Source: Basidiobolus meristosporus CBS 931.73 (Eukaryota; Fungi; Basidiobolomycota). Taken from it: a DNA stretch of 51,955 bases. The first letter of the stretch is position 1; each line of letters starts with the position of its first letter. The stretch spans positions 1 through 51,955 of the forward strand of contig MCFE01000623.1 of NCBI GenBank assembly GCA_002104905.1, written 5' to 3'. The position numbers were made by a program, and so were the translations under genes. Positions 23,323 through 26,610 of this stretch are shown in pieces. The notes under the pieces are model-generated. The model saw nothing but the letters and a program-made list of their open reading frames with translations. It was not told the DNA's origin and did not search any database.

Positions 23323-23806
23323 TATTTTAAAATTTGTAACTCCACCTAAATATTCACCTAACTTAGCCACTTGGATCATTACCTACAAATCTTAGAGAAA
23401 ACTAACCAAATTCCTTGTTGGGTTTACTTGGAATATTTTCACCAGAATTTCAGGTACTCTAAACATTAAAATTCTTAAGGTTATTCAAACAGCCCCAAAC
23501 TTTGCACACATGTTCTTGAGACCTTCTCAAGCCTATTCTACATGTTTATTATGCCAAGACCATGTACAAGTGTAAACACTACTTTATATTCAATAGTTCA
23601 TTTAGTAAAAACCACATACTCTACTTGTCCTCCAAATCACTACCAATATCTCCAAAACTCTTACAACATCTAAACATATTGTGTATGTTTGATTTGCCAA
23701 GACCATGTAGATGTATAAATATTACTTTTACAATCAATAATCAAGTTAAACCACATAATCTACATATTCTCTGATTCACTTCCAATATCTCCAGAACACT
23801 TACAAT
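23323..23806 (+). mobile_element. Degenerate Copia LTR (23323-23668) plus a duplicated 3' LTR part
   Basis: CCACCTAAATATTCACCTAACTTAG...CTCTTACAACA, then a second 3'-end segment at about 23680-23806. Confidence 0.85.
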
Positions 23807-24559
23807 TATACTGTGGTATGATAAGCTCCATGTGTGCCTTGACAGTACTTTAAGCAAGCTAAGGTAAACAAATGCTGCAAGGTTCTAAGGAGTAATAGTA
23901 GTTACATAACAAACTGGAATGCTGTATGATATCTACTTGTTGCTTAGTGAAGTTCAGATGAAGTATTAATACCTTGAGAACCTTATTATACTAGCAACCA
24001 ATATGTTCAAGAAAGGCTCAAAGAAGTTAGGTGCTAAGCTTGGACCCTTTTGGGCCAGTTAGATAACTTCTGTGTCTTCACTAATTACAATATCTCAAAC
24101 TGAGTATAGTTGACATGAGTCTAAACATCACTACATCACCTATTGAAACAAAGAACCTACTAATCTATGCATATATATCCAAATGACCTGAACTAAATAA
24201 TCAATACACTTTACGTTTATCCAGTAAGTCGATAAGATATTATTGCCAAATCACCACCAACAGAAGTCAAGTATCTCGATGGAGATATATGATAATATTA
24301 TATGGGTGTTGCTTATAAGTTTGGGTTATCATATGGTTGTCTTTCAAGAAATTTGAGGGCTTCTGGAGATTGGAAGAAATAATTAGAAGTGACATATGCA
24401 TTTATTTTGCTATTATACATCATTCAAAAGAACGTTAATGTCAAATCAGCAGGGCTAATGTACAGGTATTTGTTTCAATATATATACAACAGCGGCCAAC
24501 CCTAGCAGCGGCTAAATGAAGATGAGGTTAATATTCTCAAGGAAAAAAAGTGGTTCGGG

Positions 24560-24644
24560 CGCGTCAGAAATTTGGGTATAGATAATTAGGTCAACAGCGT
24601 TCCTTGGAACTTACTGACTGACGTGCTTGATCTCGTCATCCGCA
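24560..24644 (-). ncRNA. C/D-box snoRNA copy 1
   Basis: C box ATGACGA, C' TGTTGA, D box CTGA, terminal stem GCG/CGC. Guide CTATACCCAAATT is complementary to LSU rRNA AAUUUGGGUAUAG; second candidate guide GCACGTCAG is complementary to CUGACGUGC (rRNA sequence recalled from memory). Confidence 0.85.
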
Positions 24645-24780
24645 TGTATATTCAGAATAATTACCTTGTCAGCGGGTCTATGGCAAAATTCCCATATGGT
24701 GCTTGGAGGGAACTTAGGGTTAGGGCTAAGTTAAACTGGGAGAATTAGGGTTAATTGAGGAAATGATAAGAAATGATTGC

Positions 24781-24869
24781 ATCTAGTCAGAAATTTGGGT
24801 ATAGATAATTAAGTCAACAGCGTTCCTTAGAACTTACTGACTGACGTGCTTAATCTCGTCACTCTAGAT
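24781..24869 (-). ncRNA. C/D-box snoRNA copy 2
   Basis: C box GTGACGA, D box CTGA, perfect 6-bp terminal stem ATCTAG/CTAGAT, same guides as copy 1. Confidence 0.88.
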
Positions 24870-25009
24870 GGCTCAACATGAATTTAAACTTACCTCGTTG
24901 CCAAGTGGTGTCAGTAGTCATGGACTGTCCGGCAACCCTGTCACTGAAATAACATTAGTACTTGGCTCGAAAAAAGGGAGGATCCTGAGAATAGCGCAAC
25001 GATATGAAA

Positions 25010-25092
25010 GTGTCGGAAATTTGGGTATAGATAATTAGGTCAACAGCGTTCCTAAGAACTTACTGACTGACGTGCTTGATCTCGTCACTCAC
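25010..25092 (-). ncRNA. C/D-box snoRNA copy 3
   Basis: C box GTGACGA, variant D box CCGA, terminal stem GTG/CAC, same guides as copy 1. Confidence 0.8.
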
Positions 25093-25646
25093 AAACATAA
25101 CCATCACCACAACATGGATTGTCACTTACCTATACACCTCAGTAGCTTCGTATGCGAGTGTCTCACATTGCGAATCATCCTTCATCATCCACTGCTTATA
25201 TACTTCAGTCGCGAGTGAAAAAAAACCGGACCCCTGTTTACAAGGGGCGATTGGAATGATCAGCTTGGGGCAGAAACAGATGATTCAGATCCACTTAACC
25301 AACATGCTAATCAGGCTTAGAGGCCTAATCAACGTTCGTGATTAAACGACCGTATTTGCCATAAAAGTGAATTTTCTGCATTCTGCCAGTATTTTCAGAA
25401 CTTACCATTTCCAGCGATGGTCGAAAAGGAAGTGATTCGATTTCAGAGATTTTCCTTAATCGATTTTATGCATATTAGGGATTCTACTAAATCTGGGATT
25501 TCTGTGTTCCTAAATTCGAGCTTATGAGTCTCGCCACAGCAGACCTCTCGCTCACATAAAAGGTAGTCGAGTCCACCACGGCTGATCAGAACTTTGGGTC
25601 GAACTTTATTCTTTCTCTCTTTCCCTTGTAAATTCACTCTTTCGTC

Positions 25647-26610
25647 ATGTCTAAAATCCTGCCAAGATCCATGGTCATCGAACAAGGCCAAGGGATGATT
25701 GAGTGCGCCGTTGTCGGGGACACCGCTGCCCTCACTCGTTTCCACTCCCGCTACCCTTTGAAACTGATTCGTCCTTCGGCCCACATGAAAAAGACCGCTT
25801 TAGTATACGCTTTGACCTATGGTGGCGGTTTGGTTTGTGGTGATGTTGTCACCATGAACATTGCGGTGAGGAAAAGCGCCAAGTTGGCTATGCTGACTCA
25901 AGGTTCCACCAAAGTGTTCAAGAAGCGTAACCCTAATCTCCCACTTTCCACCGCCGCTTCCGCCCAACACTTCAAATACACCATCGAGGACGACGGACTT
26001 TTGGTGCTTCTCCCTGACCAAGTCACCTGCTTCAAAGATGCCATGTACCATCAGACACAAGACTTCCAAATCTCAGGTACCGGTTCCTTGGTCCTGTTTG
26101 GACTGGTTCACAAGTGGAAGAATGAGCCGTGGTGAAAGCTGGGAGTTTGCTGAATACAACTCCGTCAACAACATCTTCCACGATGGTAAGCTCGTTCTTC
26201 GCGACGCCCAAGTCATCAGAGATGACCATCGCGTCAAGGAATTGGAGGGTGGTGAGATACGCTCAGCAGAGGACAAGCAAGCCATGAACCACTTCGGACA
26301 GCGCACAAATTATGGTTACCGCGTCGCACCTTACGAATGCTACGCCATTTTGGTCATATACGGACCTCACCTGAAGGAGCTCACTAAGAGCATACTCGAG
26401 GAGTTCAACCGAATTTCCATCTCACCCAGAAGCTCCAAGCTTCCTCCTCAGAGCCCCATCTGGTCGGCCTCGGTCATCGGCAATGACGACGGAGTGATCC
26501 TTCGTGCCGCTGCTTTGACCACGGAGGAGATCCGACTTTTCGTGAAGGAGCACTTGAAGGAGATTGTCCCAATTATTGGTGATGACGTTTATTCACGCAT
26601 GTTGATTTAG
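25647..26610 (+). CDS. ureD: Urease accessory protein UreD (one frameshift at about 26097-26099)
   Basis: YPLKL, YALTYGGGLVCGD, LTQGSTKVFK, PDQVTCFKDAMYHQTQ in the first frame; DWFTSGR...GESWEF...RDAQ in the second frame. Confidence 0.9.

Follow-up and report, generated by a model that had tools for sequence, protein, structure and literature searches.

We identified three copies of one small nucleolar RNA (snoRNA) on the minus strand of a contig from the fungus Basidiobolus meristosporus CBS 931.73 (GenBank MCFE01000623.1, positions 1 to 51,955; this whole stretch of 51,955 nucleotides (nt) is referred to below as the window). Judged by sequence, the copies are box C/D snoRNAs of the type known in yeast as snR40, and they probably occupy the three introns of a non-coding host gene, with one copy of the same RNA in each intron. 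The features observed in the DNA are the repeats themselves, their boxes, the complementarity of their guides to ribosomal RNA (rRNA), the covariation of their terminal stems, the geometry of the splice signals around them and the lack of an open reading frame (ORF). Box C/D snoRNAs are stable RNAs of ~70-120 nt that carry a C box (RUGAUGA) and a D box (CUGA) and are bound by fibrillarin, Nop56, Nop58 and Snu13.

Conserved cores, terminal stems and spacers

A repeat search of the window found three direct repeat copies with start-to-start spacings of 223 and 226 nt. Read on the minus strand, copy A (24564..24639) extends from the C box ATGACGA to the D box CTGA, copy B (24787..24862) from GTGACGA to CTGA, and copy C (25013..25088) from GTGACGA to a variant D box, CCGA. 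Each core is 76 nt long, and in all three copies the limits of the conserved block are exactly the C box and the D box. Any two cores differ at 4 of the 76 positions (72/76 identical). The spacers of 150 and 147 nt and the outer flanks, by comparison, resemble one another only at the level of random sequence (global alignment z ≤ 1.4 versus shuffles, ~25% ungapped identity), the sole exception being a faint similarity of copies B and C in the 5' parts of their introns (z 2.8). A preliminary description of this DNA, made from the letters alone, had reported near-identical 76-base-pair (bp) repeats with unrelated spacers. Both statements hold, although its start coordinates for the repeats were shifted by one base. 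The cores further share a C'-like TGTTGA and a GTTC/GAAC hairpin, so that the C, C' and D boxes and the hairpin are present on the minus strand as that description had placed them. With the three cores as queries, nhmmer detected no further copy in the window, and a search of the whole window for the D guide with up to three mismatches returned the three copies and one weak site.

Six core positions vary among the copies: the C-box purine, a single base 5' of the D' guide, a pair of bases in the loop of the hairpin, a base directly following C' and a D-box base. The last of these, at core position 74, is a U>C change in copy C; core positions 11, 34/35 and 51 also bear copy-specific bases. Both guides are invariant across the three copies.

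Outside the cores, short terminal stems of the kind expected for box C/D snoRNAs can be formed by all three copies. They comprise 4 bp in copy A (UGCG/CGCG; extended interval 24560-24644, minus strand), 7 bp in copy B (CAUCUAG/CUAGAUG; 24780-24870, minus) and 3 bp in copy C (GUG/CAC; 25010-25092, minus). The register is common to the three, in that the base beside the C box is unpaired and pairing starts immediately after it, and the pair at -3/+2 is C-G, A-U and U-A in the three copies. Because different sequences pair in one register, we regard the stems as covarying, which bears out the earlier remark that they differ in sequence and yet all pair. Fold z-scores of the single strand were not significant (-0.2 to -1.6). 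A non-significant whole-molecule fold energy is the expectation for C/D RNAs.

Assignment to the snR40 family

The Rfam comparison suggested in the preliminary description returned no family match anywhere in the window at gathering thresholds. In a permissive local search, all three copies aligned end to end with RF01201 (snR40) at 28-30 bits (copy A 28.1, copy B 30.4, copy C 27.9) and E values of 0.002-0.007. The last 17 core positions, which comprise the D guide and the D box, are identical to the RF01201 consensus. A C box lies near the 5' end of each core and a D box near its 3' end. The C box has the form RUGACGA in all three copies, a variant shared with the Rfam snR40 consensus and with many relatives. 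The likeness to yeast snR40 (RF01201; family CD_43 in 'The fungal snoRNAome', PMC5824354) includes the unusual C box UGACGA, an identical D guide and D box with 25S U898 as predicted target, a hairpin between D' and C', and a similar length of the RNA. We conclude from these sequence comparisons that each core is a box C/D snoRNA of snR40 type. This agrees with the earlier view of the repeats as copies of one C/D snoRNA rather than a CRISPR-like element, given the full-length snR40 match of every copy.

We also collected relatives from metagenomes by searching for a C box followed by the same guide and D box, which yielded 85 loci (L001-L085) representing 55 distinct RNAs. The D'-C' hairpin is found in relatives as well, where it is built from other stem sequences.

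Guide elements and predicted rRNA targets

Pairing was evaluated against ribosomal DNA (rDNA) of other eukaryotes, for example the full rDNA unit L089. The Rfam hit on L089 begins 3 nt into 25S, and positions were adjusted accordingly. The D guide forms 13 Watson-Crick pairs with the 25S rRNA of L089 and 14 with the many rDNAs that read AAATTTGGG; the target stretch in 25S rRNA is AAUUUGGGUAUA. Opposite the fifth guide nucleotide, counted from the D box, stands the counterpart of yeast U898; Um898 is the snR40 site in yeast (PMC5699541). The D guide therefore has the properties of a box C/D guide (at least 10 nt of complementarity adjoining the box, with the target at the fifth nucleotide), and the window copies group with snR40 as U898 guides. 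In these rDNAs, then, the complementarity falls on a known methylation site, in line with the snoRNA identity proposed in the preliminary description.

The D' region is unlike that of yeast snR40, which targets 18S G1271. Its longest rRNA complementarity is a perfect 9-bp pairing of the D' guide GCACGUCAG with 25S 873-881 in the large subunit (LSU), and not with 18S. The D' box is CAGU, at the place where cmscan aligns the yeast CUGA, and the fifth nucleotide then falls on A876, which is methylated in yeast by snR72 (PMC5699541). An independent relative, L042, pairs over 13 bp with the A876 site from the same place in the RNA. From these pairings, we suggest that the D' guide most likely directs methylation of the A876 equivalent.

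Structure of the predicted host gene

Each core is flanked by splice signals on the minus strand. Predicted intron 1 (24944..25129, 186 nt) contains copy C and has the donor GTAAGT, a branch-like TACTAAT and the acceptor TTTCAG. Predicted intron 2 (24736..24893, 158 nt) contains copy B, with the donor GTAAGT, a branch-like CCTAAT and the acceptor TCCCAG, and predicted intron 3 (24512..24664, 153 nt) contains copy A, with the donor GTAATT, a branch-like TATTAAC and the acceptor ATTTAG. The intron borders named in the preliminary description (25129/24944, 24893/24736 and 24664/24512) are the first and last bases of these GT..AG intervals. The C box lies 41, 31 and 25 nt from the donor in copies C, B and A, respectively, close to the 25-40 nt given earlier for copies placed past a GTAA(G/T)T donor and before a branch site and AG, and the D box lies 69, 51 and 52 nt from the acceptor AG. 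By its splice signals alone, the locus thus has the one-snoRNA-per-intron arrangement of UHG/GAS5-type hosts. On its two strands together, the window contains 11 instances of GGTAAGT versus 4.6 expected, and two of these are at this host gene. The splice signals have been retained amid flanks that are otherwise randomised, and we therefore argue that they are used.

The predicted first exon spans 25130..25172 (minus), its 5' end being a guess placed ~30 nt after a TATA box. Predicted exon 2 (24894..24943, minus, 50 nt) has a single open frame, and predicted exon 3 (24665..24735, minus, 71 nt) holds the telomere-like 12-mer CCCTAACCCTAA. The predicted last exon (24380..24511, minus) includes AATAAA at 24406-24401, with an inferred 3' end. 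A candidate promoter for RNA polymerase II (Pol II) is suggested by the sequence at 25195..25254 (minus), with CCAAT at 25254-25250 and the TATA box TATATAAG at 25202-25195, the latter 73 nt upstream of the first donor.

We assessed coding capacity for each exon separately, by frame translation and frame arithmetic. The open frame of exon 2 is closed by a stop as early as codon 2 of exon 3, and the frame that is open in exon 3 itself has no ATG. The longest possible host ORF would have ~37 codons, and then only if transcription began upstream of 25188, a position just 14 nt beyond the first base of the TATA box. We found no ORF of note downstream on the minus strand. Like UHG/GAS5-type hosts, the locus has no long ORF in its exon-by-exon frames, and its exons are mutually unrelated. 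The earlier proposal of diverged, non-coding host exons is consistent with this outcome.

Proposed biogenesis and function

From this arrangement we infer transcription, splicing, processing and methylation, as well as any benefit of having three copies. We propose that the locus is a short Pol II gene whose primary transcript on the minus strand would be ~0.8 kilobases (kb) long (~25170 to 24380). Splicing and debranching would be followed by exonuclease trimming of each intron back to the small nucleolar ribonucleoprotein, the limits of which would be set by the C/D boxes and the short terminal stem, leaving a product of ~80 nt. The D guide would then direct 2'-O-methylation of the LSU residue equivalent to yeast U898, the function of snR40. 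The D' guide, which precedes the degenerate D' box CAGU, would direct methylation of the A876 equivalent, 22 nt from U898 in the same region of the rRNA.

Metagenome relatives, guide turnover and origin of the array

Among the 55 distinct relatives, 32 have a donor-like hexamer within 70 nt upstream, versus 6 of 55 in an antisense control. The median donor distance of the relatives is 32 nt, and their median distance from D box to acceptor is 58 nt.

We compared second guides across 58 distinct RNAs, namely the 55 relatives and the three window copies. The yeast-type guide for 18S G1271 is present in 10 of them. The largest class (28/58) pairs with 25S 864-872/873 and places G867, a yeast methylation site, at position 5. 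The A876-type guide is carried by four RNAs, L042 and the three window copies, and the remaining 16 have other, unassigned second guides. The U898-guide family therefore has no fewer than three alternative types of second guide, which fit 18S G1271, 25S G867 and 25S A876, all of them methylated in yeast. As far as these sequences tell, the second guide of the family is evolutionarily mobile, which agrees with published cases of target switching in fungal snoRNAs (PMC5824354; PMC2780460).

In two metagenome contigs from another, fungus-like organism (L035 and L038), this snoRNA occurs as a tandem pair with a spacing of 224 nt. Donor, branch and acceptor signals accompany each member of the pair, and the flanks of the two can still be aligned. 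The second copy (within L035:3890-4210, minus strand, and likewise in L038) has a mutated C box (CGACGA) and a mutated guide, which marks it, on sequence, as a recent duplicate that is decaying or changing. The search for a second copy was negative at 83 of the 85 relative loci (67 of the 85 have at least 400 nt on both sides), and multi-copy arrays thus appear to be uncommon in the U898-guide family.

The pair in L035/L038 looks like a young stage, and the window array like an old stage, of one process. We suggest that the array arose by tandem duplication of a ~224-nt unit consisting of exon, intron and snoRNA. The exons and intron flanks would afterwards have drifted to randomness, with selection, possibly together with gene conversion, maintaining the 76-nt cores, the pairing of the stems and the splice signals.

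The rDNA unit L089 came from a scan of prokaryote genomes for the target pair, which brought up over 100 contigs (L086-L190), deposited in assemblies of bacteria and archaea and in metagenome-assembled genomes, that are eukaryotic rDNA present as contamination. Many of these contaminating contigs are ~9.2-kb units of budding-yeast-like sequence.

Weighing of alternative explanations

Several observations weigh against an intronic array of snR40-type guides. The copies do not reach the RF01201 gathering threshold of 50 bits. However, only two of the 18 relative loci that were run through Rfam, both with the yeast-type second guide, passed it (58-72 bits). Because only yeast-type relatives pass, RF01201 is in effect a budding-yeast model, and the low scores of the window copies are no argument against homology. 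Copies A and B have CUGA as their D box, whereas copy C, with CCGA, may be a weaker copy because this box is non-consensus. The rRNA used for pairing came from other eukaryotes rather than from the host itself. The D' duplex has only 9 bp, a length of rRNA match reached by ~20% of shuffled guides; both internal boxes, D' (CAGU) and C' (UGUUGA), are degenerate, and the internal hairpin is predicted to take up the 3' half of the D' guide. With respect to the host gene, the acceptor of intron 2 is ambiguous, as CTAAC and more AGs follow downstream in 'exon 3'. The 5' end is uncertain because an additional GGTAAGT at 25406-25400 (minus), upstream of the candidate TATA box, could be an extra donor, and the gene may, from this motif, have an extra 5' exon, which would end at 25407, and an extra intron. 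Finally, the three units share descent, so their splice signals do not amount to three independent observations.

Polycistronic snoRNA precursors are made in plants and from the snR72-78 cluster of budding yeast. A similar unspliced transcript, cut by an endonuclease between the units and trimmed by exonucleases with the GT..AG signals unused, would suit tandem copies that lie on one strand at regular spacing behind one candidate promoter. The terminal stems could then act as processing landmarks, and processing independent of splicing is documented for some intronic snoRNAs (PMC11028025). We nevertheless consider this improbable, given that consensus donors stand at the family-typical distance in three units despite the randomised surroundings, that branch-like sites and AGs are likewise at family-typical distance, and that the intronic mode prevails in fungi outside Saccharomycotina (PMC2780460). 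That the copies are three separate genes, each with its own promoter in a spacer, is very unlikely. AT-rich, TATA-like strings do occur in spacer 2, but the spacers are unrelated and have no common upstream motif, no TATA lies ~30 nt before each C box, and the splice signals would be left unexplained.

The number of functional copies is a different matter. It is possible, though we doubt it, that only some are functional and that copy C is a paralogue in decay, much as the second copy in L035 seems to be. Copy C has the shortest terminal stem (3 bp), the U>C change in its D box is the sole change in a box, and the L035 duplicate, with both C box and guide mutated, offers a precedent. On the other side, copy C retains the two guides, its C box and hairpin and a stem that can pair, and is no more diverged than A is from B, every pair having four differences. 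Regular repeats with unique spacers, together with a marginal match to Rfam CRISPR-DR47 (E = 4), might also suggest a non-functional repeat or a prokaryote-type array of clustered regularly interspaced short palindromic repeats (CRISPR), which we judge to have next to no chance of being correct. On the opposite strand the repeats correspond to a snoRNA family, their conservation pattern fits the parts of a snoRNA exactly, and a 76-nt repeat with 150-nt spacers is unlike CRISPR in size. This is a eukaryotic genome whose genes are of fungal type, and the Pfam matches in the window, to UreD, a questin-oxidase-like protein, SMI1/KNR4 and a copia-type reverse transcriptase, are in keeping with a fungus. 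The snR40 match, the gene content and the conservation pattern together rule out a CRISPR array. The interpretation that we favour thus remains a three-intron, non-coding host with an snR40-type snoRNA in every intron.

Comparison with known systems

Yeast snR40 is a single, independent gene, whereas the window has three copies that are predicted to be intronic. Closer parallels in layout are found in other fungi. In Neurospora, 45 of 55 C/D snoRNAs are intronic, mostly as single copies, and UHG-like non-coding hosts with short ORFs have been reported (PMC2780460); fungal snoRNA clusters have also been described elsewhere (PMC3596301). The Neurospora clusters I-V (PMC2780460; fungal clusters in PMC3596301) resemble the window host in their short exons, short ORFs, one C/D snoRNA per intron and similar distances to the splice sites. 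They differ in that hosts of the Neurospora type carry different snoRNA families, whereas the window host repeats one family three times.

Tandem arrays of the same intronic snoRNA are known from mammals, namely SNORD115/116, SNORD113/114 and rat Bsr, and a review suggests that understudied genomes may hold more such arrays (PMC11028025). Like the window array, these consist of tandem units with the same C/D snoRNA in each intron, conserved cores and poorly conserved exons. The mammalian arrays, however, have tens of copies and are imprinted, brain-specific and mostly composed of orphan guides, whereas the fungal array has three copies, all of a canonical rRNA guide. The preliminary description had set a host dedicated to a single snoRNA apart from hosts such as GAS5/UHG, which usually carry different snoRNAs. 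The anatomy it gave largely stands, but the layout is not new: non-coding hosts with one snoRNA per intron have been published for Neurospora (PMC2780460), and tandem intronic arrays of a single family for mammals (PMC11028025). It is a known kind of arrangement and involves no new mechanism. What stands out, to a modest degree, is the multi-copy state, which is unusual for fungi, and the A876-type second guide in a U898 guide RNA.

We speculate that Basidiobolus might amplify canonical rRNA guides as a lineage-wide habit, in host genes whose introns all hold the same snoRNA; these would be the fungal equivalent of the SNORD115/116-type arrays, put to use in ordinary rRNA modification, and the second guide of snR40 would have moved among 18S G1271, 25S G867 and 25S A876. 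Taken as a whole, this scenario seems unlikely. The immediate gain is an unannotated RNA gene for this genome, comprising three snoRNA copies and their host, and the presence in an early-diverging fungus of an snR40-type U898 guide with a different second guide. Such cases help to trace the exchange of the two C/D snoRNA guide elements in the course of fungal evolution. The array and the young L035 duplicate jointly suggest a two-stage picture in which exon-intron-snoRNA units are duplicated in tandem and the sequence outside the RNA then decays.

Additional features of the locus and its neighbourhood

An exact (TTAGGG)2 at 24714-24725 (plus strand) falls within predicted exon 3, where the host RNA strand reads CCCUAACCCUAA. 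More TTAGGG-like units extend to 24760, TTAGGGTTA is found at the 3' end of intron 2, and exon 4 has UAGGGUU. The window contains more telomere-like 12-mers than expected (3 versus 0.11). By its sequence, the stretch in exon 3 looks like a remnant of interstitial telomere repeats, and it also supplies CTAAC branch-like motifs. Since CCCUAACCCUAA is in the sense orientation of a telomerase template, the spliced host RNA could be imagined to have a role of its own, which we consider much less likely than the lineage-wide scenario. The idea that this exon belongs to a telomerase RNA was rejected, as there was no Rfam telomerase match up to E = 10 and such 12-mers are over-represented in the window in any case.

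Upstream, an 11-bp hairpin lies at 25333-25306, between the candidate TATA box and the additional GGTAAGT. The presumed first exon contains a C/D-like stretch of 50 nt (25188-25139, minus) that runs from ATGATGA to CTGA. We discarded it as a snoRNA because it lacks a terminal stem, is too short and has an 11-nt complementarity to 25S (index 668 in L089) that does not adjoin a box; the stretch is probably due to chance. A scan for sigma-70 promoters and terminators was disregarded, the host being a eukaryote.

Antisense to the start codon and 5' untranslated region of UreD, the interval 25586-25648 (minus) contains ATGACGA and, 39 nt on, TCGACCCAAAGTTCTGA, which is identical to the D guide and D box at 14 of 17 positions. 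This site could be a decayed fourth copy. However, its interior is dissimilar (z 0.57), there is no stem and it does not fit U898, and the resemblance is probably accidental.

The UreD urease-accessory gene itself is divided between two overlapping ORFs (25647-26135 and 26038-26610), whose Pfam matches abut at profile position 90. The sequence suggests a 1-nt frameshift in a T run at ~26093-26096 (plus), not an intron, which could reflect a fault in the assembly or mean that the gene is a pseudogene. Two pairs of ~57-nt direct repeats with a period of 139-143 nt occupy positions 23529-23805, in an AT-rich region (GC 0.34) downstream of the host gene.

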